IMG/VR virus record: IMGVR_UViG_3300005529_000001
Coordinates: 62,001-126,000 of that record
Reading direction: 5' to 3' (one strand)
Length of the DNA stretch: 64,000 nucleotides
The notes beneath the pieces were generated by a model that saw only the letters and a list, made by a program, of their open reading frames with translations, was not told where the DNA came from and searched no databases. Shown here one piece after another: positions 38 through 53,435 of the stretch (within the stretch, counting starts at the first letter, position 1; each line of letters starts with the position of its first letter). Both the position numbers and the translations under genes were made by a program.

Positions 38-298
38 CTACTTCTCGTGACGACGCTTTTTCACAGGCGGGCCGAGGACCTCTCTCCGGCCTATCGCTGA
101 TGAATCACTGGTCCAGGGCTGCCACATCATGTGGACAACAGCGTTAACGAGACCGACGATGACACCGAACCTGGGCATAACACCGCTCGTCTCGGGGTAC
201 CAGATGACCAGGGTGCCCGGAGCGAGGGGACCTTCAAGGCTGATGTGGCGTCGGTCGGAAAACAACCCGTCGGACAACCGGTGGGTCGCGAAGTCCAT
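38..298 (-). CDS. hypothetical protein, SH3-like 'PG..V/FG.IVG/MW' type
   Basis: ORF; PGTLVIW...FGVIVGLV...HMMW pattern resembles the 56.6-59.3 kb family; start chosen at ATG 298. Confidence 0.5.
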   Translation of the reverse strand: MDFATHRLSDGLFSDRRHISLEGPLAPGTLVIWYPETSGVMPRFGVIVGLVNAVVHMMWQPWTSDSSAIGRREVLGPPVKKRRHEK

Positions 299-299
299 C

Positions 300-536
300 T
301 CAGTTGACCTGATAAAGATCGGCAGAGGGAACCCAACCAAACTGGGTACGGGACGTCAGCAACATCACGTAACCGTGGCTTGCAGCGACAACAAGGACCA
401 TGTCATTGGGCATGACCCTGCCACAACGAAAGGCGTCAGCATCCAGGCTGGAGAAAAGCTGCCGCGAGAACTTGTGGGTATAGACGGCCAAGTCCCCGGG
501 TTTCAGACCGGGTCCTGTTCCTGCTTGCGCATCCAT
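300..536 (-). CDS. SH3b-like paralog family protein
   Basis: KPGDLAV...CG...MVLVVAA...MLLT...FGWV family motif; start uncertain. Confidence 0.65.
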   Translation of the reverse strand: MDAQAGTGPGLKPGDLAVYTHKFSRQLFSSLDADAFRCGRVMPNDMVLVVAASHGYVMLLTSRTQFGWVPSADLYQVN

Positions 537-1147
537 TCAGCGATCTCGTGTTGGATGTCCCAGTAAGCTCGCGAAGCCTCACGGTAACGCTCCACCAGCG
601 ACGGAGGGAGCGGGACGGAGTGCTTGTAGAGCAAGGATGCCGACGAGCCCGCCGCCGCTTCGGGCGGCGGGCGCGGCACCGGGTCTTCGATCCCATAGAC
701 CGGGAACTGCTCCGACTCGCTGACGTAGTACCGTGGCAACCCGCTGCGGACCGCCCGTGCGCGCTCGCGGTTCACTGTCTCCCGACGTTCCAGGTTCTTG
801 GCGACGTTGCCGTTACGCTCGCGGCGGCCCTGCCGGACCCAGCCGACGGTCGCGTCAGAGGCACGGGCCATCGCCTCGTCTCGCTCGGCATCGGTGAGGT
901 AGCCGCCCGACGTCGAGAACTCCCCGACGTAGCAACGGGGCTTGACCAGCATGTGGTAGACGACGACCCGGCTGGGATGGATGCCTGTCGCGTGGAACCA
1001 CCGCTGGGTCATGTCATCGCAACCCGGTCCATCGCCGACGACGAAGCTGTAACCGCACTCAGCGGCCTGCACCAGCTTGGGAACGTAGTGCTCGGTGAAC
1101 TCCTCGGGGGTCAGGTCGAGGTGACCCGTCACCATCACTGTCTTCAT
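503..1147 (-). CDS. SLOG-superfamily (YspA/DprA-like) protein, putative
   Basis: TVMVTGH, FVVGDGPGCD, RDEAMARASD pattern; GGAG SD before ATG 1147. Confidence 0.5.
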   Translation of the reverse strand: MKTVMVTGHLDLTPEEFTEHYVPKLVQAAECGYSFVVGDGPGCDDMTQRWFHATGIHPSRVVVYHMLVKPRCYVGEFSTSGGYLTDAERDEAMARASDATVGWVRQGRRERNGNVAKNLERRETVNRERARAVRSGLPRYYVSESEQFPVYGIEDPVPRPPPEAAAGSSASLLYKHSVPLPPSLVERYREASRAYWDIQHEIAEWMRKQEQDPV

Positions 1148-1303
1148 GGCTCTCTCTCCTCCTTCTCCTTGTCTGGGTGGAAGCGGCAGAGGACGTTGTG
1201 GGTGCCGAAGCCCGCGGCGGCACCGCAGCACCGGCAGGTCCAGCAGTTGGCATAGACGCACCAGGCGTCCCAGGGCGGTTCGGGCACCCGGGTGTGGTCG
1301 TCG

Positions 1304-1690
1304 CTAGTAGTCCAGCTTGGTTGGCTCACTGGGAGCCCCCTCCTGTTGGTCGCCGTGGAGCAGCCAGCGACCCAAGCGCTGCAGCTGGGCCCAGGCGAAG
1401 GAAACGAGCACCCCGGCGAAGAACACCGGCGAGTAGGACACCGCCATCGCTCGCTTGCGCCAGCCCCAGCCCTTGGCACGCCGCCAGCCGACCCCGGGAT
1501 CGAGAGCGATGCCCGAGAAGGCATAGCTGATGAAACTGATGATGAAAGCGAAGACGCAGGGCATCACCCAGCTGGGACCACGGTGGAGCTGGGCCAGGCG
1601 GACCGCGACGAACAGCGGGGTGCCCAGGCACGCGAACGGGCCCGCGGCGACGCCGAACAGGAAGACGAAGCGTCTCCAGATGGGTTCCAT
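1304..1690 (-). CDS. membrane protein, paralog of 1690-2058
   Basis: three hydrophobic segments; shared RxF..LF..GP, S(Y/W)xP.FF and W..(H/T)GD motifs; start/stop overlap. Confidence 0.6.
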   Translation of the reverse strand: MEPIWRRFVFLFGVAAGPFACLGTPLFVAVRLAQLHRGPSWVMPCVFAFIISFISYAFSGIALDPGVGWRRAKGWGWRKRAMAVSYSPVFFAGVLVSFAWAQLQRLGRWLLHGDQQEGAPSEPTKLDY

Positions 1691-2058
1691 CACTCGACCC
1701 CCGGGTCGCCGGTGGCGATCCAGCAGACCAGCCGCCACAGCAGCTTGCCGGCACCGGCAACAGCTTGGACAACGAAGACGATGGGCGCCCAAGAAGCCAG
1801 CAGCCACCTCTGCCGGAGAGAGCGGCCCTCAGACTCGCTCCAGAGCCAGACGCGCTCGGTGGAGCCGAGGATGCCGACGATGAAAGAGAGGGCTGACCAG
1901 ACAAAGAAGCACGCCGCGTAGACGCCGGCGGGGGATTGGCGATGGTCCTGAGCGAACACCCACGAACCGACCAACAACAGGCCGGGACCGCAAAAGAGCG
2001 ACAGGACAAAGAACAACCGCTTGAGCGCGTTGTCACGAGCGATGACGGTGCCGCTCAT
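1690..2058 (-). CDS. membrane protein, paralog of 1304-1690
   Basis: three hydrophobic segments; ATGA overlap with the upstream gene. Confidence 0.6.
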   Translation of the reverse strand: MSGTVIARDNALKRLFFVLSLFCGPGLLLVGSWVFAQDHRQSPAGVYAACFFVWSALSFIVGILGSTERVWLWSESEGRSLRQRWLLASWAPIVFVVQAVAGAGKLLWRLVCWIATGDPGVE

Positions 2059-2273
2059 CGCACCACCAGGACGTCGATGCGCTTGCCGTTCTCGGGATCC
2101 GACATGTGCTGCTTGCCGTGGTACTCGCACAGGAACCGCCGGCGACCCTCGGTGAGCTCCTCAGCCTCGGCGAGGCGGACGTCAGCGAGGCGGTACGAGT
2201 GATCGGGCCCGGTGACGACGACCTCAGCGTCGGGGCACTGGAGGCACAGCTTGGCGAGGTCTTTCGCTCTCAT
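2055..2273 (-). CDS. hypothetical protein
   Basis: ORF with cassette promoter 6 nt upstream of ATG. Confidence 0.75.
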   Translation of the reverse strand: MRAKDLAKLCLQCPDAEVVVTGPDHSYRLADVRLAEAEELTEGRRRFLCEYHGKQHMSDPENGKRIDVLVVR

Positions 2274-2305
2274 GGGTACATCCTACCACAGGGCGCGCCA
2301 GACTT

Positions 2306-2638
2306 TCACCGGTAACGGGGCCCCAGCACGAACAGGGTCTCGAAGCCATCGTGAGAGACCTGTTCGAACGGAAACAGGCTGGGCACGTCGCCCCAACGGG
2401 TGCTGTCGTTGTGCCACAGCTGGACGCCACGCCTTGACTCGACCCACCAGTTGTGAGGAGAGGCACCCATCCAGCGATGGAGGGGTTGCCCTGCCCTGAG
2501 GGCCCTGAGGGCCCAGGGACCGACGTGGGCCCGGAGCTTCAGCAAGTCAAACTCGATGCCGGCGGGGGTCTGGCGCATCCGTGCCTCAGCACGGGCGAGG
2601 TCCTCCCGGAGGTGGCGGGCCCTACGTGCGGTTTCCAT
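2306..2638 (-). CDS. hypothetical protein
   Basis: ORF; TGA stop lies in the next -35 box. Confidence 0.65.
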   Translation of the reverse strand: METARRARHLREDLARAEARMRQTPAGIEFDLLKLRAHVGPWALRALRAGQPLHRWMGASPHNWWVESRRGVQLWHNDSTRWGDVPSLFPFEQVSHDGFETLFVLGPRYR

Positions 2639-2643
2639 GTGAC

Positions 2644-2808
2644 TCACCTGTGATAGCAGAGGAGGGCGATGAGCGTCGCGGCGATGAAGGCCAGGCCGAG
2701 CGGCCACGGCCGGGCACGGACGTAGAGGGAGCTGCGCCGCGGCGAGCTCAACATGCTGCGACGCCGCGCGGTCCCGTCAGGGAGGACCTGCTTGAAGGAG
2801 TGACCCAT
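2644..2808 (-). CDS. 54-aa membrane peptide
   Basis: not in ORF track; own promoter GTGAAA..TACAGT; C-terminal hydrophobic segment. Confidence 0.55.
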   Translation of the reverse strand: MGHSFKQVLPDGTARRRSMLSSPRRSSLYVRARPWPLGLAFIAATLIALLCYHR

Positions 2809-3068
2809 GGGAGCACTGTAACACGGGGGCGGCGCACCGTTTCACTGCCGGGGCTGACCGCGGTGTGGCGCATCACCAGGGGGACCAAATTCGAGCGTGA
2901 AATGTCCCGGGATTTTTGTGTGCGATCTAAGCGGGGGCCTCCCCGGCAATGGCCTGCAAAGGTTGCCAGGGGGCCGGGGGGCCATGGGGCCCGCTCGACC
3001 CCATCTTGGGGCCAGGCCCCTAGGCCTTCTGTGGGCCTTCTACGGGGCCCCCTGCCGCCCCGGCCCGT

Positions 3069-3296
3069 TCAACCGTGATCGCGGACAGCTCTGACGAACG
3101 CGCCCGGCACCAGGTCGACGTTGACCCAGTTGGCGCGCTGGCACGTCGGGCAGCGCCAGGTGATCGCGTCGCCGTCGCGGCAGTCGGGCTCGAGCCTGCA
3201 ATCGCTGGGCTCCAGCTCGACGACTGCCTCGCAGGTGCTGTCCTGGCACGTCTGCTGGATCGCTCCCGCTTGCTTCCCTGCCATGATGATCTTCAT
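3069..3296 (-). CDS. Zn-ribbon protein
   Basis: CxxxxC...CPTC; cassette promoter. Confidence 0.7.
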   Translation of the reverse strand: MKIIMAGKQAGAIQQTCQDSTCEAVVELEPSDCRLEPDCRDGDAITWRCPTCQRANWVNVDLVPGAFVRAVRDHG

Positions 3297-3329
3297 GAAA
3301 TTGACTCTACACCCGTTCTTCCATCGGGT

Positions 3330-3536
3330 TCACTCGCCAGCGACGAAGTACGTCGGTTGCCCGGCGAGCCAACGCAGCAGCGTCAGCCACAGCGACTCCC
3401 TGACGAACGTCCGCATGCATGGACGACACATCGCGAGGCTCGGGTGGATCCCCCAGGCGTGCGGTGGGAAGACAGTCTGCGACATCTGGAGCTCCGCGTC
3501 GCAGCAGGTGCAGGCGTACTTCGGGAGGGCGTCCAT
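3330..3536 (-). CDS. small Cys-motif protein
   Basis: CTCC...CRPC; TGATG coupling to 3536-3676. Confidence 0.6.
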   Translation of the reverse strand: MDALPKYACTCCDAELQMSQTVFPPHAWGIHPSLAMCRPCMRTFVRESLWLTLLRWLAGQPTYFVAGE

Positions 3537-3676
3537 CAGTGACAGCAACGCAGCGCGAGGAGGACCCCGACGCCGGCTGCGAGGTAGAAGTAACCCATCC
3601 CGACGAAGACCTCGACCGTCTTGGTCGACGGGACCCGCCGGATGTACGCGTCCCAGATGCTGTGCTGCTCGTCCAT
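3536..3676 (-). CDS. 46-aa membrane peptide
   Basis: not in ORF track; promoter ATGAAA..TAGGGT-N6-ATG. Confidence 0.55.
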   Translation of the reverse strand: MDEQHSIWDAYIRRVPSTKTVEVFVGMGYFYLAAGVGVLLALRCCH

Positions 3677-3688
3677 GAGCTGACCCTA

Positions 3689-4204
3689 TCAGGCGACGTC
3701 GGCCTCTTTCATCTGGTCCTTCCAGGCGTCCCAGTCGAAGTCGCTGTCGTCTCCCGCTGCCATGATGCGAGCCACGCTCGCCCAGCTCCCCGCAGGCGGC
3801 TGCGTCACGTCGTGGTCCTCGAACGCAGCCTTGCGAGCCTCCCGCACGTCCTCGTCAGCGTTGACCTGGGCGAGGCGCTCGGCTGACAGCGTGGTGACGG
3901 GCGCCGAGAACGCCTCTCGCTGCTTGCTGTTGGCGATGTCGCACAGCTGGCGGTGGTACTGCATCGCGATCGTCCGGGCGTTCTGGAGGTGGAAGCCCGT
4001 CAGCTGGCGGCCGCTCTTGACCCAGCGGGCGTAGTAGCTGCCCTTGCTGGCGTGGTTGCTGCGGAAGCCGACCGAGTTGTCGTGCCGCGTGTGGGAGGTC
4101 GCCTTCTCGTCGGCGGTCTGGCGCTCGTAGATCGCCACGATGGCACGCTCGACCGCGCGGGGATTCGTCTGGAGCATCTGCTGGATCCGCTCTTTGTTCC
4201 ACAT
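3689..4204 (-). CDS. conserved phage hypothetical protein (MWNKERIQQML...)
   Basis: true start set by TATACT-N6-ATG; the 417-aa track ORF is an upstream overrun. Confidence 0.8.
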   Translation of the reverse strand: MWNKERIQQMLQTNPRAVERAIVAIYERQTADEKATSHTRHDNSVGFRSNHASKGSYYARWVKSGRQLTGFHLQNARTIAMQYHRQLCDIANSKQREAFSAPVTTLSAERLAQVNADEDVREARKAAFEDHDVTQPPAGSWASVARIMAAGDDSDFDWDAWKDQMKEADVA

Positions 4205-4281
4205 GAGCCCAGTATAACACGCGTCGCCCGAGACCTTCACAGTCCCGAGCGATTCGTTGCTATTTTGTCCGGATGGGCCCG

Positions 4282-4545
4282 TTACCGCAGCATCGACGGG
4301 AAGACCCACGAGGAGACTTCCAGGGCGTACCCCAGGGCGTCGACCTCGTGGGGCTTGGAGGTGTCGTGGGGGCCCTTGAAGGCCACCCCGACGCGGATCA
4401 CCGAGTCTTTCCCGACCTCGACCGCAAGGACCTTGCACGGCTGGTGCTGGCGGGGGCGGTGGGCGTCCGCCGCGACGATGTCCTTGAGCTCGTAGACGCT
4501 GCCGACGACGAGCTCGCACTGGCCGAAGAGTTTGGACCTTGACAT
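4282..4545 (-). CDS. hypothetical protein
   Basis: cassette promoter + ORF. Confidence 0.75.
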   Translation of the reverse strand: MSRSKLFGQCELVVGSVYELKDIVAADAHRPRQHQPCKVLAVEVGKDSVIRVGVAFKGPHDTSKPHEVDALGYALEVSSWVFPSMLR

Positions 4546-4577
4546 GGGTCGACTCTACCAGGATCTGCGATCGTCTT

Positions 4578-4772
4578 TCACCCATTGTCCGGGAATGGAT
4601 GGTAGTTGGTGGGGACGCGTCCCCTGTCGTCGACGGCGTTGAGCGCCTCGACGAGGGCGGTGATGGCTGGGTTCGACATGCCGTCGGTGTTGATGCCGTC
4701 GTTGTCCTCGACCCGACGGATGAAGGTCTGTAGCTCCTGCAGCTGAGCGTGAGTGAAGGTGATGGTTGCCAT
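4578..4772 (-). CDS. hypothetical protein
   Basis: cassette promoter + ORF. Confidence 0.75.
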   Translation of the reverse strand: MATITFTHAQLQELQTFIRRVEDNDGINTDGMSNPAITALVEALNAVDDRGRVPTNYHPFPDNG

Positions 4773-4802
4773 GATGGCAACCTACCACTTTCGTCCGTGA
4801 CC

Positions 4803-5105
4803 TTACACCGGGAGGCGGTCGTTGTAGGTGATGCTGTCCGCCTCATGGAGCGTCCAGTAGAGGTCCCAGTCGGCGTCCTCCAGGTTACGCCAGTCCTGGA
4901 TCCCCGGGTCCCAGACCGCCCATGAGATGAAGCTGATCTCATAGCAGGAGGAGAGCAACCGCGTGCCGTCGGGGGAGAGCGAGAGGGTGTGGTAGCCTTC
5001 CTCGACCTTGTTCTGTTCCTCCGATTCCATGACGTCGTCCGTCAGGCAACCGGGGAAGAGCCGCGCTGCTTGGTCCGGGGTGAGGCGCTTGAGGGTGATG
5101 TCCAT
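4803..5105 (-). CDS. acidic hypothetical protein
   Basis: cassette promoter + ORF. Confidence 0.75.
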   Translation of the reverse strand: MDITLKRLTPDQAARLFPGCLTDDVMESEEQNKVEEGYHTLSLSPDGTRLLSSCYEISFISWAVWDPGIQDWRNLEDADWDLYWTLHEADSITYNDRLPV

Positions 5106-5164
5106 GACAGCATCCTAACACGCGCGTGCCCGACCTTTCACAGATCGGGCACGAGTTTTGTTGG

Positions 5165-5344
5165 TCAGTGGTTGTCGTTGGTCCGGACCCCGATGTACGG
5201 TCCCCAGTCGTCTTGGTACTCGGAACGTGGGATGAGTTCGATGTCAAACGCGACGGACGGGTCGGTGTCCATGGACAGTTCCTTGTCACCGTGACCCTCG
5301 GACACGAGGGCGTCAACCATCTCCTTCAGGTCGTTCAGTGTCAT
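5165..5344 (-). CDS. 59-aa acidic protein, GC-dinucleotide-depleted gene
   Basis: not in ORF track; MTLNDLKEMVDALVSEGHGD...; own promoter; only 2 GC dinucleotides, both Ala codons. Confidence 0.75.
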   Translation of the reverse strand: MTLNDLKEMVDALVSEGHGDKELSMDTDPSVAFDIELIPRSEYQDDWGPYIGVRTNDNH

Positions 5345-5618
5345 GAACCGAATCTACCACGAGTCGTTGCCTGTTTTCACCGAAAGACGCGCGGACCTGT
5401 CGCACCCAGTCCTGGGCATCGTAGAGACCGGCTTGCGCAGCGAGCCCATCGAGCTCATCAAGCTGGTCCTGGAGTGACTTCTGCGACTGCGGCTTGGTCC
5501 CCATCAGCTTCCTCCGGCGCTTTTCTCGACGGTCACCGAGCCGTTCGAGGGAGAGCCCTATCACGAAGATGGCAACGAACATGACGATAACGCCGTGGAA
5601 GAAGCACGTCTCGTCCAT
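5313..5618 (-). CDS. membrane-anchored hypothetical protein
   Basis: cassette promoter; N-terminal TM segment. Confidence 0.65.
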   Translation of the reverse strand: MDETCFFHGVIVMFVAIFVIGLSLERLGDRREKRRRKLMGTKPQSQKSLQDQLDELDGLAAQAGLYDAQDWVRQVRASFGENRQRLVVDSVHDTERPEGDG

Positions 5619-5650
5619 GTCCCGATCCTACCTCAGCTCATCAGCGACTT

Positions 5651-5842
5651 TCACCCGAGACGTGCTTCGACGACCTTGCTCTGGACGACAACGCAGCTGA
5701 CGCGGTCAGCGACGCTGTCTGCGGGCCAGCCGAGCATCGGCTCGCCGTCGACCGAGACGAGCCGGAAGATCATGTTCTTTGCTTCGGCGAGGTTCTGGGC
5801 GCCCTTCTTGCTGAGGCCGATGAAGTCGGCTGCGCCGCTCAT
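5651..5842 (-). CDS. hypothetical protein
   Basis: ATGA-coupled to 5839-6036; stop in next -35 box. Confidence 0.7.
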   Translation of the reverse strand: MSGAADFIGLSKKGAQNLAEAKNMIFRLVSVDGEPMLGWPADSVADRVSCVVVQSKVVEARLG

Positions 5843-6036
5843 CGCGGGCCCGCCCGGAGACCCGCGGCCTCCTGGATGTCGAGGCGCATCAGCCTGCACT
5901 CGTCTGCCGCAGTCACCAGCGCGTCTTGTTGGAGCTTGACCTGCGACGTCAGCTGCTCGATCTTGTCAGCTGCGTCGTTGTGGTTGAAGAGGCGGAGCTC
6001 TGCGATGAGCTGCTCGGTGGTCTTGCGCTTTGCCAT
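5839..6036 (-). CDS. hypothetical coiled-coil protein
   Basis: cassette promoter + ORF. Confidence 0.7.
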   Translation of the reverse strand: MAKRKTTEQLIAELRLFNHNDAADKIEQLTSQVKLQQDALVTAADECRLMRLDIQEAAGLRAGPR

Positions 6037-6119
6037 GGTCTCACTCTACCTGGATCTGCGGGTGATTTTCACCGAGCACCCGCGTCGGGGACACATCCAA
6101 CCCGTCTTGAGCCTGATCT

Positions 6120-10231: not shown

Positions 10232-10945
10232 TCACCGGTCCGAGCAGATTTCACAAGGAATGGGCATTCCCGTGGTGTCGGTGGGACAGAAGCCACCCGT
10301 GTTGGGGACCGACGACCCCGTCACCGAAACAACCCCGTTGGTGCACTTGACATCGAAGTAGCTGGAACAAGCGCTGCCCAGTCCCAAGCAGATGTTGACA
10401 TCGGAGCCGCTGGCAGCGAGACCCGTCGCGGTCGGGGTTGCGCTGCTGTAACGTTGGTAGTAGTCGATGCGGACCTCGCCCCCACAGGTGCCGTTGACGA
10501 CGAACTTGCCCGGGACGGTGTCGCCGAACGCGATGTCCATGCCCGGGATGTCGAAGGTGTACGAGTAAGTGTTGGGACCCGCCGCAGCTTCGGGCGCGGC
10601 GTCCGCGGCAACCACGACGTCAGCAGTCACCACGTCAGGGTCAGACCCAGCGTCGGGGTCACTGGGAGCGTCGGTCCCAGCGTCGACAGTGGAACCTGCC
10701 TCGACGTCCTGCTTGGTGAGCTTGGGGCTGTCGGTGAGCCCCGCGTCGGGGACGACCGCTGAGGCTTCGGGGACGGGCGTCGCGTCGGGAACGGGCGGGT
10801 CACCTGCGTCATCTCCAGCGAACCCAGCTTCACCCATCGGCTGGGCGATCGGCTTGTTGAGGGGCGGGACGTTCTCAGGGCCCGAGAAAGCGCTGCCGCC
10901 GCAGGCGACGAGGAAGAGAGCCGTGATGGCGACTGTGTGTCTCAT
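10232..10945 (-). CDS. lipoprotein with D-A-G low-complexity linker and Cys-rich C-terminal domain
   Basis: lipobox LVAC-GG; repeated DAG/DAA; cassette promoter. Confidence 0.75.
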   Translation of the reverse strand: MRHTVAITALFLVACGGSAFSGPENVPPLNKPIAQPMGEAGFAGDDAGDPPVPDATPVPEASAVVPDAGLTDSPKLTKQDVEAGSTVDAGTDAPSDPDAGSDPDVVTADVVVAADAAPEAAAGPNTYSYTFDIPGMDIAFGDTVPGKFVVNGTCGGEVRIDYYQRYSSATPTATGLAASGSDVNICLGLGSACSSYFDVKCTNGVVSVTGSSVPNTGGFCPTDTTGMPIPCEICSDR

Positions 10946-16336: not shown

Positions 16337-16732
16337 TCACTGTGTCTCGCGAGCCCAAGCGAGAGCACCAGCGCACAGCTTGTTGCTGAGGCCGGTGGTG
16401 TTGGGGTACCAACGGAAGTTCTTGGTGGGCTTTCCGTACCGCTGGAAGAGGAACTTACTGTTGGCAATGGCGCTCTTGACAAGGGCCATCACGTCCTTGG
16501 CAGTGGGCTGCTGGCCAGTCGAGCGATCGAACTCAGCGCGGGGCTCGTAGGAATCGGAGCGTCCGGAGTCCATGCCTCCCACTGCGCCGGTGGTGAAGAC
16601 GCGGACCCGCACCGTGTCGTTGTTCGGGTCCCACTCCACCTTGAGGGAGTCGTTGTACCGGAAGTCTCCGGTGATGTGGGCGCTGAGAGAACCGATGACG
16701 ACGGGCGACTTCTTAGCGGGGGTGGTGTCCAT
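16337..16732 (-). CDS. hypothetical protein
   Basis: TACATT-N6-ATG fixes the start. Confidence 0.75.
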   Translation of the reverse strand: MDTTPAKKSPVVIGSLSAHITGDFRYNDSLKVEWDPNNDTVRVRVFTTGAVGGMDSGRSDSYEPRAEFDRSTGQQPTAKDVMALVKSAIANSKFLFQRYGKPTKNFRWYPNTTGLSNKLCAGALAWARETQ

Positions 16733-16745
16733 GTCTCGAATGTAC

Positions 16746-16779
16746 CACGGTCCCCGATGATCTTTCACCGGGGACCGTG
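16746..16779. repeat. 11-bp inverted repeat overlapping a cassette promoter
   Basis: CACGGTCCCCG / CGGGGACCGTG with a 12-nt loop containing the -35 box. Confidence 0.7.
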
Positions 16780-16788
16780 TGATGATCT

Positions 16789-17436
16789 TTACTTCAGGAA
16801 GATGTGGTTCTCCGAGATGAGTCGGTTGTACACCTCCAGACGGGACTCCTTGTACTGGTCGTCGAGTCTCGAGATCCTCCCGTAGTGGAGGAGACAATGA
16901 CACTCCGACTTCGGAACACCCATCCCGACGAGGACCTCGGTCTGGGTCTTCTCCCACTCCTTCTCCTCGTTCATCATCCGGAGGACGATCTTCCAGTTCG
17001 GGTCGTCGGTGTCCTTGTAGTCGGGGTGACGATCGAAGAGACCCTTGGACATCTCGTCGAACATCTTCTCGAGGGTCGACCGGAGGGTCCCCAACTTGAC
17101 GGGGTCGGTCTTCTTGTTCTGGGCGAGGTAGAGGACACCCGTCCAGTCCTTGATCTCCTCGTTGACGACACGAGGAGAATCTTCCTCCCCACACTCCCGG
17201 AGATGGGTCATCGAGTTGAGGACGCTCTCGGCGACCTCGGGGGTGACGTTGAAGATCTTCACCACCTGGTCCTTGACGACCTGACGGTTCTTCTCTTCGT
17301 CCTTCTTGTCCAGGTACGACCCCCACTCTGGGAGTTCGTATTCCACACTCCGGACTGTGACTTCGTCATCGTGTCGGTACGCTTCGTACACTGTCCAGAC
17401 GATGTCTTTGACGGCCGAGCGGGTGAGACGCTTCAT
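16789..17436 (-). CDS. 215-aa charged protein, GC-dinucleotide-depleted gene
   Basis: leadered promoter with GGAGG SD; 7 GC dinucleotides in 648 nt; 4 Ala. Confidence 0.85.
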   Translation of the reverse strand: MKRLTRSAVKDIVWTVYEAYRHDDEVTVRSVEYELPEWGSYLDKKDEEKNRQVVKDQVVKIFNVTPEVAESVLNSMTHLRECGEEDSPRVVNEEIKDWTGVLYLAQNKKTDPVKLGTLRSTLEKMFDEMSKGLFDRHPDYKDTDDPNWKIVLRMMNEEKEWEKTQTEVLVGMGVPKSECHCLLHYGRISRLDDQYKESRLEVYNRLISENHIFLK

Positions 17437-17479
17437 GTGTCCTCCAGTCAGACCAGTCTACCACGACTGGCGTGATCTT

Positions 17480-17794
17480 TCACCGTCTCTCGACGACTTC
17501 CAGCGTCAGCATGCGACCGAGCTGCGGATTGAAGGCGCGGAACGCGCCGCGCTTGCCGTCGCTGTCTCGCTCCTCGACCCACAGGGTGAGGACGGGCTCC
17601 TTCCACTTCTGGGTGAAGTAGATGCCCCTGAACTTTCCGGTGAAGTGGCGAGGGTTGATACCCTCGCTCACCGAACGAGCGGCTTCCTGCCGTGCCTGTG
17701 GGCCGGGACGCCTGCCCGCGAGGTAGGAGACGAAGACGGTGGAGTTGAGTGGGACGTCCTTCAACGCTGCGACCATCTGCTTGCCGTTGACCAT
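17480..17794 (-). CDS. hypothetical protein (possible SH3/WYL-like fold)
   Basis: cassette promoter; C-terminal FRAFN motif. Confidence 0.7.
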   Translation of the reverse strand: MVNGKQMVAALKDVPLNSTVFVSYLAGRRPGPQARQEAARSVSEGINPRHFTGKFRGIYFTQKWKEPVLTLWVEERDSDGKRGAFRAFNPQLGRMLTLEVVERR

Positions 17795-21844: not shown

Positions 21845-22132
21845 CTACCACGAACGTGGCAGTCCTTTCACTCTGGCGCGGCTGATCCTCGGGTGGTGCC
21901 AGGGCCTGTTGTGGTGGGGGACATCGTTCCGGTGCCAGAGCCCATCGGAGCCCTTGAAACAATACGTCTCCAGCAGGCCGAGGTAGCCCAGGTTGGTGCC
22001 CCAGTAGGCCCTGCACCGCATCGGCTCGCCCGGGTGGCTCATCTCCCACAGGGCACGCTGGATGTCGGTGTACCGCATCCCGCCACGGTCAGCGATCAGG
22101 TCGAGGACCCTGACGGACTTTGACTGCAGCAT
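21845..22132 (-). CDS. hypothetical protein (possible winged helix)
   Basis: cassette promoter + ORF. Confidence 0.65.
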   Translation of the reverse strand: MLQSKSVRVLDLIADRGGMRYTDIQRALWEMSHPGEPMRCRAYWGTNLGYLGLLETYCFKGSDGLWHRNDVPHHNRPWHHPRISRARVKGLPRSW

Positions 22133-22211
22133 GGTCCCAACCTACCACAAAAAGGATCGCGGGTGCACACCCGCGCCCGCGCCCACGCAATGGCTCATCG
22201 ATGAACCCACA

Positions 22212-22241
22212 GTGCAACCAAGAGTTCATCGATGGTACACT
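22212..22241 (+). promoter_or_regulatory. cassette promoter with no downstream ATG
   Basis: GTGCAA-N18-TACACT. Confidence 0.7.
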
Positions 22242-22247
22242 GGACCC

Positions 22248-22355
22248 AATCCGCTTGAAGCTGGCCTGGAGAGCGAGCCCTGGTCCGGGAGGACGGCGGG
22301 GAGCCACGCAGCCTGCCCAACGGTTGGGCTCCCCAGAAAGCGCTGCCCGTCCACA
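22248..22355 (+). ncRNA. candidate small RNA
   Basis: between two promoters; GGACGG/CCGTCC and GGGGAGCC/GGCTCCCC stems, alternative GCCCAA/TTGGGC hairpin. Confidence 0.45.
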
Positions 22356-22428
22356 CCGTCTGTGCAACCCCCGGTGCTTTCCTGGTAGACTGGGACCATC
22401 AACGCTCCACCACCCCGGAGGAAACACA

Positions 22429-23250
22429 ATGGCTGGCATGAACCTGAAGGTGGCCCGAGGCTTCGCCCTCGGCACCCGCCGATCGACCATCAAGGTCCCA
22501 CCCGAGCTCCGCGTCAAGCACTCGACCGGCATGGACTGGCTCGACGACGTGCTGGGCAGCGAGGGCGGTGTCACCGCCTCGTCTGTCATCATGCTGACGG
22601 GCGGTCCCGGCTGCGGCAAGAGCACCCTGATCCGGCAGCTGGCCAACTCGATGGCCCGCGACGGCTCGACGCTGCTCCCCATCTACAACTGCGGCGAGGA
22701 GAGCCTGTTCCAGGCTGAGCTCGCCAACGAGCGGCTGCAGGTCACCAACGACTTCATGGTCGGTGAGGAGACGGAGCTGCCCAAGCTGCTGACCTTCGCC
22801 GACAACGTGAGGAAGGCCAACCCGAAGAAGGTCGTCACCATCCTGCAAGACAGCCTCCAGACCCTGAACGACATGAAGTACAAGGACGGCGGCACCACGG
22901 GCAACACCCCGGTCCGCTGCGCCGAGGCGCTGGTCAGCTGGTCGCAGGAGAAGGTGGGCAACTTCGGCCACGTCTGGTTCGTCGGCCAGGTGACGAAGGG
23001 CGGCGAGTTCGCCGGCAAGAACGTCATCAAGCACGCGATTGACGTCCACATGCACCTGTTCTACGACGAGGACAAGAAGTCGGCGACCTACGGCATGCTG
23101 CTGGGCGAGGTCCAGAAGAACCGCTGGGGTTGCAACGGCAAGACCTACATCCTCGGCCTGACCAAGACGGGCATCGAGGAGCGCGGCTCCTTCACCAAGG
23201 GCCAGGACTTCGACGTCGACGGCAAGGAAGACGAGGGGGAGGCTGCCTGA
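22429..23250 (+). CDS. RadA/Sms-like RecA-family ATPase (ATPase domain only)
   Basis: Walker A GGPGCGKST, GEES, DSLQT, GQVTKGGEFAG, KNRWG; own promoter and GGAGG SD. Confidence 0.85.
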   Translation: MAGMNLKVARGFALGTRRSTIKVPPELRVKHSTGMDWLDDVLGSEGGVTASSVIMLTGGPGCGKSTLIRQLANSMARDGSTLLPIYNCGEESLFQAELANERLQVTNDFMVGEETELPKLLTFADNVRKANPKKVVTILQDSLQTLNDMKYKDGGTTGNTPVRCAEALVSWSQEKVGNFGHVWFVGQVTKGGEFAGKNVIKHAIDVHMHLFYDEDKKSATYGMLLGEVQKNRWGCNGKTYILGLTKTGIEERGSFTKGQDFDVDGKEDEGEAA

Positions 23251-48283: not shown

Positions 48284-51200
48284 ATGATCAAGTGCCAGAT
48301 GTGCCGCGGCTCTGGGTGGTACCAGTCGTCGCCAGGCAACAGGAGCCAGTGTCCGTATTGCAACGGACGTGGTAGCATCAACGAGAACTCGCCCAGCGAG
48401 CAACGTAGAGCTCGTGACTTCGAGTCTTTCTATGGCGATGACCTCAATCGAGCTGGTTATAGCACGAAAGAGATCAGCCGCATCTTGGAGGAGAAGTCGG
48501 GCCAGATCGTACAAGCGCTGAAGACGATGCCTGTGAAGGGCCCTATCGCTTCGTCTCAGGTCGGTCGCCCGCCCCAACTTCGTCCCACACGAGTGCCATA
48601 TAAGCTTGACTCTGACGAGAAAGAGCGGCTCAGGCAACTTCGTGATCCTTCGCAACAGACTTTGCCTCCGACGCAGGCAACATCAACTGATGTAAAGCGC
48701 CAACAAACAGAAGTAGTTTCCAGTCACACAACGGCGAAAGCCACAGAAAAGAGAGCAGACATCATGGGAGAAGACGACATTCGCGGCCGACGGGCGCAGG
48801 ACATGATCCTAGCCCCGAACGAGTACGCATACATCAGCGACGAGACCAAGGGCGAAGTCAACGTCTTCGTCGGCCCCAACAAGCAGTCGCTTGCGGGCAC
48901 TGACCAGATGGTCAAGTTCGACACCAAGACGAAGCGGTTCTCGCCGACGTCACGTGAACAGGGCAACCAGCTGTTCCAGACGGCTCCCGAGGGCTGGTAC
49001 GTCGTCCTGAAGAACCCGGCCGAGGGCGACAAGCACCCGGCTGGCAGCGGCAAGCTATCGACCCCCACCCTTCGGGTCGGTAAGAAGGTTAACATCTCCG
49101 GTCCCTGTTCCTTTGCTCTCTGGCCCGGTCAGATGGCCAAGGTCGTCCAGGGCCACTCGCTGAAGTCGAACGAGTACCTGCTGTGCCGGGTCTACGATGA
49201 AGAGGCTGCACGGGCCAACTGGTCCAAAGCAGTCATCAAGACGCAGGGCGAGGCAACGACGGGTGAGGGCGCAGATGCAACTCCGAAGAACCAGCGTCCC
49301 GCCAAGGTGGTGAAGGCTGGCAGCGAGATCCCGTCCGAGGGCGAGCTCACGATGGGCAAGCTCTTCGTGGTCCGTGGCACTGAGGTCTCCTTCTACATCC
49401 CGCCGACGGGCATCGAGGTCGTCGCTGATGGTGAGAAGTATGTCCGCGAGGCCGTCTCTCTGGAACGCCTCGAGTACTGCTTGCTCCTCGACCAGAACGG
49501 CAACAAGCGATACGTCATCGGTCCCGACGTCGTGTTCCCGCGACCGACCGAGAAGTTCGTCGAGGCGCCGATCAAGTCCAACCCGGACAAGGTCAAGGCC
49601 AAGAAGTTCCGTGCCCAGGAGCTGACTCCAACGAGCGGCATCCACATCCGCGTCATCTCGGATTACACCGAGAAAGACGGCACCAAGCGCACCGCGGGTG
49701 AAGAGCTCTTCATCACGGGCAACGAGCAGCCGGTGTACTTCCCCCGTGAGGAGCACGCCATCATCAAGTACGGCGAGCAGGATGTCCACTACGGAATCGC
49801 GATCCCGCCGGGCGAGGCTCGCTACGTGCTGAACAGGCTCACCGGCGAGGCGAGCCTGGTCGACGGTCCGAAGATCTTCCTTCCCGATCCCCGGACGCAA
49901 GTCATCCTCCAGCGCGCCATCCCGCTCGACATGTGCGCTCTCCTTTACCCCGGCAACGAGGAGGCTCTCGCGATCAACGCGGCTCGCCTCGGCGTCGAGG
50001 ACCAGGACTACATGGGTGCTGGTGGAGCAAACGCCGCGTTCCTCAACAGCACTTACGAGCGTAACGCTGGCGAGAACGAGGCCTATGCTGCGGTCGCTGC
50101 AGCGGCTCCGAATGACACCGCTCGCGGTCGCATCCTGATCAAGTCGGCGAGCAAGTCCCTTCCGGGCGACGCCTTCGATCGGAAGGCGAAGTTCACTGCG
50201 CCGCGCTCCGTCATCCTCAACACCAAGTACGACGGCGCCATCGGCATCAACCTCTGGACCGGCTACGCCATGCTGCTCGTCAGCAAGGGCGGCAAGCGCC
50301 GGGTAATCCAGGGACCGGGCACCTTCATGTTCGAGTACGACGAGAACCCGCAGCTCATCTCGCTGTCAACGGGCAAGCCGAAGTCGACCGACAAGCTCTG
50401 CAAGACGTACTACTTGCAGGTCACCAACAACATGGTCAGCGACATCGTCGAGGTCGAGACCAGGGACTTCTGCCGGCTCACTGTCAAGCTGAGCTACCGA
50501 GTCAACTTCGAAGGCAACTCCGAGAAGTGGTTCGCGGTTGACAACTACGTCAAGTTCCTCTGTGACGCGATGCGGTCACGCATCCGCTCCGCGGTGCAGA
50601 AGCTGGGCATCGAGGAGTTCTACGGCAACCACACGCCAATCCTGCGTGACATCATCCTGGGTGCCAAGCCCGCCGAGGGTGGCGAGCGCACAGGCACCAT
50701 GTTTGCCGAGAACGGCATGCGAATCTACGATGCTGAGGTCCTTGGCATCCAGATGCAAAACCAGGACGTCGAGAAGCTCCTGGTCGCTGCACAGCGGTCC
50801 GTCATCCAGAACACCCTCGTCCTTGCTGAAGAGCGGCGCAAGCTGGACTTCGTCAAGGAGACCGAGGAGCTCAAGCGGGAGACAGCTTCCGCTCAGGCCG
50901 AGACGACCCGGGCAACCCTCGAGTTGCAGCGAGTCAACGCCCAGCGCAAGCTGGAGCTTGACCTGGCCCTGATCGCCAACAGCGCCAAGCAGCAGAGCGA
51001 GCAGCTTGCTGTCGAAGCAGCAACGACGGCAGCCCGAGCCACTCTCAACCTGGCCAACGAGAAGGCCGCGGCGGAAGTTGCGGCAGTCGAGCTGGAGACC
51101 GCTGAAGCCCGTCAGGCTTCGGAACGAACGCACCAGGCCGCCCTACAGGCCCTCGAGCTCGCCAAGCTCACGGCCCAGACAGAAGCGACCAAGGAGAAGG

Positions 51201-51436
51201 CAACCGCCATCAGCCCGCAGCTAGTCGCGGCGCTAGAAGCGGCGGGCAACAAGGAAGTGGCGATGAAGCTCGCTGAGTCCTTCAACGTGCTGGGCATCAT
51301 CGGCGGCGGCAAGAAGAGCGTCGCCGAGATCTTCAGTGAGCTGCTCAAGGGCACCGTGCTGGGCCCCCAGCTCGCCGCGGTGGTCAAGGGTGAGAAGAGC
51401 GAGTCGAACGGTTCGAGCAAGACGGCTCGAGCCTGA
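48284..51436 (+). CDS. major vault protein (MVP) homolog with N-terminal Zn-finger extension
   Basis: MVP-type repeats (LAPNEYAYISD..GEV..FVGP; RYVIGP; GIHIRVISDY..KDGTKRTAGEELFITG; YVLNRLTGE..LVDGP); shoulder domain LSTGKPK...SDIVEVETRDF..L.VKLSY..NF...F.V.NYV..LC.A..SRIR.AV...F.ENG; long Ala/Glu-rich cap helix; second possible start at 48764. Confidence 0.85.
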   Translation: MIKCQMCRGSGWYQSSPGNRSQCPYCNGRGSINENSPSEQRRARDFESFYGDDLNRAGYSTKEISRILEEKSGQIVQALKTMPVKGPIASSQVGRPPQLRPTRVPYKLDSDEKERLRQLRDPSQQTLPPTQATSTDVKRQQTEVVSSHTTAKATEKRADIMGEDDIRGRRAQDMILAPNEYAYISDETKGEVNVFVGPNKQSLAGTDQMVKFDTKTKRFSPTSREQGNQLFQTAPEGWYVVLKNPAEGDKHPAGSGKLSTPTLRVGKKVNISGPCSFALWPGQMAKVVQGHSLKSNEYLLCRVYDEEAARANWSKAVIKTQGEATTGEGADATPKNQRPAKVVKAGSEIPSEGELTMGKLFVVRGTEVSFYIPPTGIEVVADGEKYVREAVSLERLEYCLLLDQNGNKRYVIGPDVVFPRPTEKFVEAPIKSNPDKVKAKKFRAQELTPTSGIHIRVISDYTEKDGTKRTAGEELFITGNEQPVYFPREEHAIIKYGEQDVHYGIAIPPGEARYVLNRLTGEASLVDGPKIFLPDPRTQVILQRAIPLDMCALLYPGNEEALAINAARLGVEDQDYMGAGGANAAFLNSTYERNAGENEAYAAVAAAAPNDTARGRILIKSASKSLPGDAFDRKAKFTAPRSVILNTKYDGAIGINLWTGYAMLLVSKGGKRRVIQGPGTFMFEYDENPQLISLSTGKPKSTDKLCKTYYLQVTNNMVSDIVEVETRDFCRLTVKLSYRVNFEGNSEKWFAVDNYVKFLCDAMRSRIRSAVQKLGIEEFYGNHTPILRDIILGAKPAEGGERTGTMFAENGMRIYDAEVLGIQMQNQDVEKLLVAAQRSVIQNTLVLAEERRKLDFVKETEELKRETASAQAETTRATLELQRVNAQRKLELDLALIANSAKQQSEQLAVEAATTAARATLNLANEKAAAEVAAVELETAEARQASERTHQAALQALELAKLTAQTEATKEKATAISPQLVAALEAAGNKEVAMKLAESFNVLGIIGGGKKSVAEIFSELLKGTVLGPQLAAVVKGEKSESNGSSKTARA

Positions 51437-51518: not shown

Positions 51519-53435
51519 ATGGATGTTTTCAGCTCACACCTCGGCCTCATCATTGGGGGCGTGGTCTTCCTGTTCGCGGTGTTGCTCCATCGCATGGTGC
51601 TACGCCTTTTCGGGATGGTCGTCATCCCCGAAGACGGCATCGGCATCGTCACAAAGAAGTTCGTGCTCTTCGGAACCAACAAGGTCCTGCCTGACGGAGC
51701 CGTCGTCGCTCTCCAGGGCGAAGCTGGCGTCCAGGCTGACACCCTCGCGCCGGGCGTTCACTTCGGTCTCTGGCCTTGGCAGTTCGACATCGCAGTCCAG
51801 AAGTTCGTCACCATCGCCCGAGGCAACCTGGGTGTTGTCGTCGCTCGGGACGGCAAGGCGATCAGCGGAGGTCGCATCTTGGGCCGCACCGTCGAGTGCG
51901 ACTCCTTCCAGAACGCCAGGCAGTTCCTGCAGTCAGGCGGCGAGCGCGGACCCCAGCTAGCGATCATCCCGCCCGGGACCTACCGCATCAACACCGGGCT
52001 CTTCACCATCCAGATGACTGACGTCACCGAGGTCCATGACAACATGGTCGGCGTCGTCACCACCAAGGAGGGCCAGGCTCTCGACACGGGTGCCATCGCG
52101 GGACCCGAGGTCCCCGATCACAACATGTACCAGGACCCGCAGAAGTTCCTGAACGGCGGTGGCCGCAAGGGTCTCCAGGAGCAGGTGATCCTGGCGGGAC
52201 GTTACTACATCAACCCGCTCTTCGCCACTGTCGAAGAGGTCGCGATGACAGAGGTCCCCATCGCCCAGGCAGGCGTCGTCATCGCCTTCGTCGGCAAGGA
52301 AGGCGTCGATGTCACAGGTGACTCGTTCAAGCACGGCAACCTGGTCAGCAAGGGCCAGCGTGGTGTCTGGGCCGACCCGCTCGATCCCGGTCGCTACCCG
52401 ATCAACCCCTACACCCACCGGGTCGAGAACGTGCCGACAGCAAACATCGTCCTGAACTGGGCGACGGGCAAGTCGGAAGCTCACAACCTCGACAAGAACC
52501 TCAGCACCATCACGGTGCGGTCCAACGACGGGTTCACGTTCAACCTGGATGTCTCGCAGATCATCCACATTCCCAGGGCCAGCGCCTCGAAGGTCATCGC
52601 CCGGTTCGGCAACGTCGCCAACCTGGTCACCCAGGTCCTGGAACCGACGATCGGCAACTACTTCCGCAACGCGGCACAGGGTTCCGACGTCATCAAGTTC
52701 CTCGGTGCCCGCCAGGAACGCCAGAACGATGCCAAGAAGTCGATCGGTGACGCGCTCAATGACTACGACGTTGTCGCGGTTGACACCCTGATCGGAGACA
52801 TCACTCCGCCGAAGGAGCTGATGAAGACCCTGACTGACCGCAAGATCGCTCAGGAAGAACAGGCAACGTTCCAGACCCAGCGCCAGGCGGAAGAGCAGCG
52901 CAAGGACCTCGAGCAGGCCCGAGCGACCGCAGCCACCCAGGCCAAGGTCGTCGATGCCGAGCGGAAGGTCGCCATCGCTGAGTTCGAGGCCCAACAGGCG
53001 GTGAAGAAGGCCGAAGGTGACTCTCGGTCGATGGTCATCAATGCCAGGGCCAGCGCCGAGATGGACGTCGTCAAGGCCGAGGCGGCAGCGAAGGTCAAGA
53101 CGGCGATCGCCGAAGCGGAAGCCAAGGCAACCGTCCTCAACGGTGATGCCCAAGGCAAGTCGATCGCCGCGGTTGGTACCGCAGAAGCCGCGGTCATCAA
53201 GGCCAAGGCGGACGCGGTCGACCAGACCAACTACGCTACGATCGAGGTCGCTCGGGCTCTCGCCAATGGCAAGCACCCGCTCGTTCCCCAGATCGTCGCA
53301 GGCGGCGGTGGCGAGGGCGGGGGCATGAACAACCTGACCAGCGTCCTGATGGCCAACCTCATCGACAGGGAGAGCCACCAGCCAAAGGTGAACGGCACTG
53401 CAACTCGCAAGCCCTCCGAGAAGTCGTCAGACTGA
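51519..53435 (+). CDS. SPFH/flotillin-family membrane protein
   Basis: N-terminal TM; repeated GVV...G.Q...L.PG.Y.IN units; SPFH core (ITVRSNDGF.F.LDVSQI...VLEP.IGNYFRN); AEA-rich coiled coil; LVP.I..GG tail. Confidence 0.9.
   Translation: MDVFSSHLGLIIGGVVFLFAVLLHRMVLRLFGMVVIPEDGIGIVTKKFVLFGTNKVLPDGAVVALQGEAGVQADTLAPGVHFGLWPWQFDIAVQKFVTIARGNLGVVVARDGKAISGGRILGRTVECDSFQNARQFLQSGGERGPQLAIIPPGTYRINTGLFTIQMTDVTEVHDNMVGVVTTKEGQALDTGAIAGPEVPDHNMYQDPQKFLNGGGRKGLQEQVILAGRYYINPLFATVEEVAMTEVPIAQAGVVIAFVGKEGVDVTGDSFKHGNLVSKGQRGVWADPLDPGRYPINPYTHRVENVPTANIVLNWATGKSEAHNLDKNLSTITVRSNDGFTFNLDVSQIIHIPRASASKVIARFGNVANLVTQVLEPTIGNYFRNAAQGSDVIKFLGARQERQNDAKKSIGDALNDYDVVAVDTLIGDITPPKELMKTLTDRKIAQEEQATFQTQRQAEEQRKDLEQARATAATQAKVVDAERKVAIAEFEAQQAVKKAEGDSRSMVINARASAEMDVVKAEAAAKVKTAIAEAEAKATVLNGDAQGKSIAAVGTAEAAVIKAKADAVDQTNYATIEVARALANGKHPLVPQIVAGGGGEGGGMNNLTSVLMANLIDRESHQPKVNGTATRKPSEKSSD

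Follow-up and report, generated by a model that had tools for sequence, protein, structure and literature searches.

An early phage gene nearly free of the GC dinucleotide across its predicted transcript, and an RNA-directed activity as a possible cause

GC-step depletion in an early gene of an uncultivated phage

The stretch of DNA analysed here (the window, 64 kb) covers positions 62,001-126,000 of the 369,475-bp contig IMGVR_UViG_3300005529_000001, deposited in IMG/VR and derived from an uncultivated phage. The first 47 kb of the window are densely filled with small genes of the minus strand, nearly all without known relatives. One of them, an early gene at 16789-17436 (minus strand) encoding a protein of 215 aa, is almost completely purged of the dinucleotide 5'-GC-3' (GC step in the following), although its G+C content (57%) and its G+C content at third codon positions (GC3, 0.84) both fit the genome. 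The features of this locus are listed in Table 1.

An original prediction, made from the sequence alone, had pointed to the lack of any GC step between positions 16718 and 17122 and to the presence of only seven in the coding sequence (CDS) of 648 nt, and all counts given there hold, the depletion being even stronger than was described. As 53.0 GC steps are expected from the base composition of the CDS, the observed/expected ratio (o/e) is 0.13, which is the lowest value among the 137 open reading frames (ORFs) called in the window (0.47, in an ORF of 75 aa, comes next; the median is 0.91). The longest GC-free gap in the window spans 407 nt, from 16717 to 17123 with no GC step between, and is about four times as long as the longest gap outside the purged gene (105 nt); downstream of the gene GC steps start again at 16716. 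Other dinucleotides in the CDS are close to expectation, in agreement with the earlier remark that they had remained common (CG o/e 1.06, GG 1.12, CC 0.90), and GA and its complement TC are enriched. When every word of two or three letters was compared across the window genes of 300 nt or more, no depletion was as strong as that of GC in the purged gene.

Such a deficit could in principle arise without any selection on GC as such, if the gene were of foreign origin or if a local bias of mutation, the composition of the protein, or a need for a particular mRNA structure or translation rate had produced it as a by-product. Protein composition does contribute: the encoded protein contains much Glu, Lys, Asp and Val but little Ala, and this by itself lowers the expected number of GC steps from 53 to 28. 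The depletion nevertheless survives the amino-acid-matched test that the original prediction had set for itself: with the protein fixed and the codon usage of the window applied, 28.4 +/- 3.6 GC steps are expected versus the seven observed (z = -6.0), and the minimum among 2000 draws was 17. This null and a shuffle of the gene's own codons were both rejected in each of the six family members tested with them. A second trivial source of GC-poor DNA, repetitiveness, was checked as well, and the purged gene is not repetitive. In a control set of 1.06 Mb of unrelated viral DNA, fetched by means of the promoter motif described below (with matches that are almost all due to chance), comparably GC-poor windows were found only in two unrelated genes for tandem-repeat proteins of PEVP type, which are GC-poor for trivial reasons.

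These two control genes, at 69-6092 of locus L033 and 3000-4800 of locus L105 in unrelated viral contigs, encode very long PEVPDVP-type tandem-repeat proteins (about 2000 aa in L033). Their DNA is nearly free of GC steps simply owing to the repeat unit, and they represent a class of false positives for scans aimed at word-purged genes.

Table 1. Features of the purged locus (positions in the window) and GC-step o/e values across its boundaries (last five lines, pooled over 10 loci)
Feature	Position	Strand	Details
CDS P0001	16789..17436	-	215 aa; 7 GC steps vs. 53 expected; 4 Ala; GC3 0.84; ORFan family
Longest uninterrupted GC-free stretch	16718..17122	.	flagged in the original prediction
Promoter-like element	17455..17484	-	GGTGAAAG (17484-17477), variable spacer, extended -10 box TGGTAGACT (17463-17455)
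Predicted short 5' leader	17437..17449	-	Shine-Dalgarno GGAGGA 17445-17440; no GC step
3' hairpin	16746..16779	-	15-bp perfect stem, -30.6 kcal/mol, z = -6.2; no GC step
Upstream ordinary gene, boundary marker	17480..17794	-	104 aa; GC-step density normal
Downstream ordinary gene, boundary marker	16337..16744	-	-10 box TACATT 16744-16739; leaderless ATG 16732
60 nt upstream of -10 box			GC-step o/e 0.77
-10 box to ATG			GC-step o/e 0.00; 0 in 223 nt vs. 14.9 expected
CDS, ten loci pooled			GC-step o/e 0.09
Stop codon to next gene's -10 box			GC-step o/e 0.10
60 nt beyond next gene's -10 box			GC-step o/e 0.60

The level at which the avoidance acts

Results of our analysis indicate that the avoidance operates on the nucleic acid as such: it is seen in each of the three codon phases and also where codons meet. 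At the level of the protein, Ala, whose codons all begin with GC, is represented by 0-6 residues per family protein (four among the 215 residues of the window protein, as previously noted), compared with 8.1% in the window proteome. At the level of codon choice, Cys is encoded exclusively by TGT (three codons) and Gly by GGG (five) and GGT (three) but never by GGC, also in accordance with what had been reported. The proposal that codon junctions are dodged is borne out by the shuffling of the gene's own codons among synonymous sites, which gives 10.9 +/- 2.1 G|C junction steps versus the one observed, with none of the 2000 shuffles as low as that. Guanine is the third base of 49% of codons, and of only 2% of those that precede a codon starting with C; the relevant values for other window genes are 32% and 35%, and their G|C ratios (0.99 and 1.07) are free of junction avoidance. 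In the ten family members taken together, there are 17 synonymously avoidable GC steps (NGC codons and G|C junctions) versus 282 expected.

Since the avoidance concerns all three codon phases, explanations based on tRNA supply or depending on the ribosome are excluded; effects of tRNA or codon usage, in particular, cannot account for the avoidance at junctions. The replacements of GC steps include transversions and GC3 stays at 0.84, and therefore the pattern reflects codon selection and not decay by deamination (C to T). A special overall structure of the mRNA was also considered and rejected: native messages are predicted to fold somewhat better than their synonymous shuffles (z from -1.1 to -3.9), but this range overlaps that of control genes, which also fold better than their shuffles (mean z -1.3). 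About 84 of the 369 kb of this genome were surveyed, and neither there nor in about 90 kb of the DNA of its relatives was a second purged stretch found; the survey took in 20 kb of this genome outside the window and, from a relative of 72 kb, 21 kb. As other genes show no avoidance, the purge does not represent genome-wide avoidance of restriction.

The original prediction proposed as the cause a host toxin of the MqsR type, which would act in abortive infection and cleave RNA at GC; the mRNA would survive it for lack of GC steps, and the encoded protein was taken as a strong candidate inhibitor of this toxin. The documented core motif of MqsR is GCU (PMC8546651, PMC13409141). In the ten pooled members, GCT and GCA are indeed the most depleted of the GCN words (0.06 and 0.09 of expectation), with four GCT words versus 72.7 expected and a single one, at coding position 17, in the window gene. 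However, GCC (0.29) and GCG (0.18) are purged too, as are all four NGC words (all eight words lie at 0.06-0.29 of expectation), and the bias that is left among the GCN words tracks the gene's own GC3 preference. The unit of avoidance is thus the dinucleotide and not GCU alone, which speaks against the proposed link to MqsR.

The GC steps that persist in the family were searched for a longer motif or a strand asymmetry, with an uninformative outcome, as they lie mostly in Ala codons, in which the third base follows the GC3 bias. No convincing covariation indicative of a protective structure was detected around the conserved residual steps at coding positions 313 and 387.

The predicted transcription unit and its boundaries

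The promoter-like motif upstream of the purged gene is conserved in 10 of 10 family members, and a shared motif of the form GGTG[A/T]AAG-spacer-TGnGGTA[G/C]A precedes many small minus-strand genes between 4554 and 19256 of the window. The first box of this motif often contains the TGA stop codon of the gene preceding it (e.g., 17480-17482), and several genes of the same region appear to be leaderless, with the ATG located 6 nt past the -10 hexamer. Four distant members of the family (L004, L011, L013, and L014) are leaderless as well, their ATG being located 14 nt from the start of the GGTA -10 box. At the other end of the predicted transcript, the 3' hairpin, which is conserved in relatives, is probably a terminator or a barrier to 3'-exonucleases. 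A search of Rfam gave no match. The GGTGAAAG promoter box of the next gene (16769-16762) is situated within this hairpin, partly in its stem and partly in its loop.

Judging by the o/e values pooled over the ten loci (Table 1), the purge spans the predicted transcript, from the -10 box through the 3' hairpin; the original prediction had correctly described the leader and the hairpin of the window gene as GC-free. The promoter of the purged gene has a single GC step (17470-17471), which is part of the spacer and precedes the predicted start. Of the five sites in the window that match the promoter strictly, four have GC in the spacer, the exception being the match inside the 3' untranslated region (UTR) of the purged gene. 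Of three GC steps in the 3' UTRs of the family, two are base-paired within the hairpin stem of locus L009. It is mainly because of this coincidence of the purge with the predicted transcript that we prefer RNA as the target.

The same counts may also be considered in terms of DNA. If a GpC-specific methyltransferase, base modification, nickase or nuclease operated during infection, the DNA of this gene might have to stay untouched. GC is palindromic and all the counts fit DNA equally well; two-base specificities towards DNA exist, as in the case of GpC methylation in chloroviruses, and a comparable reason accounts for the absence of EcoRI sites from the first-step-transfer DNA of phage T5. Damage to the remaining DNA of the phage would be lethal all the same, and yet none of the other genes examined avoids GC. 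The neighbouring genes have promoters of the same type, which makes a stepwise entry of this 0.8 kb alone implausible, and GC steps are admitted to the promoter spacer, which is not transcribed, but are kept out of the leader and the 3' UTR. Neither a methyltransferase nor a nuclease was seen in the scanned parts of the genome. We regard protection of the DNA as unlikely, although it deserves to be kept in mind.

Homologues and conservation of the purge

A word-indexed search revealed five relatives of the purged protein with 43-80% identity, and a profile search of 1.84 billion representatives added 12 more distant ones. DNA could be obtained for nine homologues (28-80% protein identity) from independent metagenomes of soil, mine and other origin. 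All nine are purged, with 0-9 GC steps versus 42-64 expected, and in the most extreme case, the member of locus L011, there is not a single GC step over 873 nt and not a single alanine. The homologous gene is the sole purged stretch in each of these loci. Judging by these comparisons, the purge is old and is kept by selection across the protein family.

Scans of IMG/VR and JGI metagenomes for more homologues returned the source contig only, a scan of 185,579 species genomes revealed no family member, and a tblastn search of 50,697 phage records gave no match to the purged protein. DNA sequencing runs provided identical strains only and no variants. In locus L011 the GC-free stretch extends by 105 nt (10712-10817) into the downstream gene, which belongs to one family with the 104-aa gene at 17480-17794 of the window.

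The homologues do not come from donor genomes that avoid GC steps globally, a case in which the original prediction would have been withdrawn, as their flanks are normal (o/e 0.86-0.94 in the long loci). These flanks, together with ordinary G+C content, GC3 and CG o/e (1.06), led us to reject a recent import of the gene. Taken with the two nulls, the absence of repeats and the unexceptional folding described above, they make a by-product of other biases a highly improbable origin of the purge and one that is already largely refuted. The conservation also bears on the proposed host toxin: the occurrence of the purge in 10 of 10 members examined would fit a constant partner better than a toxin of sporadic, patchy distribution.

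The encoded protein

The AlphaFold model of the purged protein, built with an alignment of 18 sequences, is confident (predicted local distance difference test score, pLDDT, 89.5; predicted template modelling score, pTM, 0.76) and comprises nine helices and one beta hairpin. A Foldseek search of PDB and BFVD revealed no fold relative (best E = 0.6), and no match to the protein was found in Pfam, PHROGs, NCBIfam, PADLOC and the ESM Atlas or by a profile search of PDB. Among the 18 family members only E81 is invariant, and Y20, W38, G39, D86, and R89 are nearly so.

The postulated role of the protein as a toxin inhibitor is an economical idea, since a protein that is needed while an RNase is active may well be the one that stops it, as T4 Dmd does in the case of RNase LS (PMC3014915), and it rests on the same evidence at the nucleic acid level as the reading that we prefer. 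Nevertheless, the protein has no relative in sequence or fold and no conserved adjoining partner gene, and it resembles neither the known antitoxins and anti-RNase proteins (such as T4 Dmd and MqsA) in sequence or fold, nor any anti-defence protein or PADLOC model. With the GCN words and the conservation of the purge taken into account, an inhibitor of an MqsR-family toxin seems to us a quite unlikely role.

Alternatively, the protein itself could be the GC-directed enzyme, its message being devoid of the enzyme's own target and its expression thereby not self-limiting. A site-free gene would be a natural design for a sequence-specific nuclease, no separate candidate for the enzyme is found nearby, and the invariant or nearly invariant E81, D86, R89, Y20, and W38 are of candidate catalytic types. 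The confident model, however, has no counterpart among the RNase, ADP-ribosyltransferase and deaminase folds of PDB and BFVD and is without a RelE/MqsR, MazF, PIN or barnase fold. A HEPN motif is not present either, as the only Rx5H stretch (R205-H211) is not conserved in the family. Moreover, the phage RNase RegB cleaves its own message and does not spare it (PMC3014915). The identity of the product with the enzyme is, in our opinion, improbable.

Neighbouring genes and the rest of the genome

No neighbouring gene adjoins the purged gene in all loci, and thus no conserved partner can be indicated. The family of the 104-aa gene located upstream in the window (17480-17794), which also adjoins the purged gene in locus L011, comprises at least 27 proteins from metagenomes, among which many residues are invariant (R28, R49-H50, W72, E75-R76-D77, and N89-P90). 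The model of the 104-aa protein is a small beta-barrel (pLDDT 86) with weak Pelota-, L19- and CAP-Gly-like matches only. A profile match of this family to MBP-AID fusion chains (E = 2e-4) was discounted as probably spurious, as it straddles the MBP/AID junction and is without the HxE and PCxxC residues of the deaminase.

A search of the purged gene and nine flanking genes with the PADLOC and NCBIfam models, and of the larger proteins of the surveyed part of the genome with Pfam, gave no toxin-like match. Methionine aminopeptidase, tried as a marker of the host, is 50-58% identical to its counterparts in many phyla and carries no host signal.

Several other genes in and around the window attracted our attention. 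The product of a gene at 48284-51436 (plus strand, 1050 aa) contains the shoulder and repeat domains of the major vault protein (MVP_shoulder, E = 6.8e-29) and is directly followed by a 638-aa SPFH/Band 7 protein (51519-53435, plus strand); a vault-like shell protein is unusual in a phage-like genome. A P-loop ATPase with weak STAND/KaiC/AAA matches is encoded at 22120-23250 (plus strand), on the opposite strand of the early-gene block, and its counterpart is kept in relatives (L002, 1299-2129; L009, 734-1564; L010, 54-884). Just past the window, at about 128.2-135.5 kb of the contig (L135, 13060-20363), there are genes of a UDP-galactopyranose mutase (E = 5e-74), two family-2 glycosyltransferases and a Cpn60/GroEL-type chaperonin, and on the other side of the window there is a gene of a GNAT acetyltransferase (L134, 15740-16360).

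Interpretation

The best reading of these results, in our opinion, is that the transcript of the purged gene is protected from an activity that is directed at GC in RNA irrespective of the reading frame and could consist in cleavage or in modification; we consider the chances of this being correct to be about even. The original prediction, according to which the mRNA is built to be translated while a GC-specific RNase is active, would thereby stand as far as the immune transcript is concerned, and cleavage is joined by modification as an admissible form of the activity. In contrast, the assignment of this activity to an abortive-infection toxin of the host is not upheld.

The proposed mechanism would be as follows. 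Selection on the nucleic acid, most likely on the mRNA, would keep the whole transcription unit free of 5'-GC-3', and the message would thus offer no target, in any reading phase, to an activity directed at GC within single-stranded RNA, be it a two-base-specific endoribonuclease or an enzyme that modifies RNA. Synthesis of the 215-aa protein could then go on while other messages are inactivated by cutting or modification, and the 3' end of its message would be shielded by the stable hairpin, itself GC-free. The GC-directed activity would be a fixed part of the infection cycle, either phage-encoded or a core function of the host, because the purge is seen in every examined member of this clade of very large phages and in none of the other genes examined. 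While the purge, its depth, its conservation, its independence of phase and its boundaries are shown by the data, we infer that RNA and not DNA is protected and that a GC-specific enzyme exists, and the same holds for any function of the protein. The product may switch the GC-directed activity off, may act alongside it or may be the enzyme itself. A more specific proposal, which we put forward tentatively and hold to be somewhat doubtful, is that an undescribed enzyme of phage or host attacks RNA at bare GC and that the single message hidden from it codes for a protein with a new fold, which switches off, directs or performs this activity. In that case the purged gene would represent the genomic footprint of a new RNA-targeting specificity and of a dedicated immune transcript.

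Several points weigh against an RNA-directed activity as the cause. GC is its own reverse complement, and tests based on sequence cannot separate an RNA target from a DNA target; the depletion of the bases flanking GC is also roughly strand-symmetric. The start site, the terminator and the stability of the message are predictions. To our knowledge, there is no known RNase or RNA-modifying enzyme specific for GC, and none is recognisable among the neighbours of the purged gene or among the larger proteins of the scanned part of the genome. The other messages of the phage, which have a normal GC content, would need to be translated despite such an activity. Finally, up to nine GC steps persist in some family members, and because they are tolerated the protection would be quantitative rather than absolute.

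The survival of site-free messages in the presence of a sequence-specific RNase is known in principle, from one small gene of Escherichia coli and from engineered constructs. We know of no natural gene, however, from which a dinucleotide has been removed so fully that alanine was given up, nor of one in which such a state persists among relatives whose identity ranges from about 80% to as little as about 28%. If our reading is true, the sequence alone predicts the specificity of an enzyme (GC in single-stranded RNA), the time at which this enzyme acts and the protein that matters at that time. Scanning of viral genomes for single word-purged genes could expose hidden conflicts between nucleases and counter-nucleases without recourse to homology, and a natural two-base cutter or modifier of RNA would serve as a useful reagent.

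Comparison with known systems

The E. coli gene ghoT is very short. Its transcript is one of 14 in E. coli that are devoid of the GCU site and escapes MqsR (PMC13409141). As in the case proposed here, a message escapes a frame-independent and single-strand-specific RNase by lacking a GC-containing recognition word. However, ghoT misses one trinucleotide in one message, whereas the phage gene of 650 nt has lost, together with its leader and 3' UTR, about 94% of the avoidable GC dinucleotides. The phage protein has moreover been reshaped by the near-elimination of Ala, the loss is family-wide, and it concerns all GCN words and not only GCU.

Engineered mRNAs devoid of ACA allow for the production of a single protein under the action of MazF (PMC5408214, PMC9102682), and they resemble the phage message in that a recoded gene is the only translatable one while an RNase of short motif is active. 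They are man-made, though, and a trinucleotide can be removed from them by synonymous changes, while the phage case is natural, concerns a dinucleotide and needed changes of amino acids. It is of relevance to the two-base specificity that Tth-MazF1 behaves as a two-base cutter, U|GN (PMC13107127).

The influenza virus PA-X protein is a virus-encoded host-shutoff RNase, whose motif GCUG is enriched in host but not in viral RNA, and inserted optimal cut sites are quickly selected against (10.1101/2022.07.08.499385). In this it parallels the case proposed here. PA-X, however, belongs to a virus of eukaryotes with a modest, genome-wide bias, in contrast to the phage, in which one gene is almost fully purged and the rest of the genome is not.

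Phage T4 offers models for both the phage and the host origin of the presumed activity. Its RegB protein, a sequence-specific RNase encoded by the phage, inactivates early messages, requires GGAG with an additional context and cleaves its own message, and the early protein Dmd neutralises the host RNase LS (PMC3014915). In contrast to the case presented here, no motif-free gene of T4 is described in the review in question (PMC3014915), and neither RegB nor Dmd is similar in sequence or fold to the 215-aa protein.

CmdT of the CmdTAC system ADP-ribosylates GA dinucleotides in mRNA (PMC11618068) and is thus an example of an anti-phage effector that acts on mRNA with a two-base specificity and without cleavage. 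Its target, GA, is not depleted in the purged gene, however, and no motif-free escape gene has been reported for CmdT.

Among the known phenomena, the nuclease-site-free message is the closest in kind to the purged transcript of the phage described here, which differs from all described cases in the depth of the purge (a dinucleotide, with loss of alanine), in its conservation and in its confinement to one gene of a phage clade.

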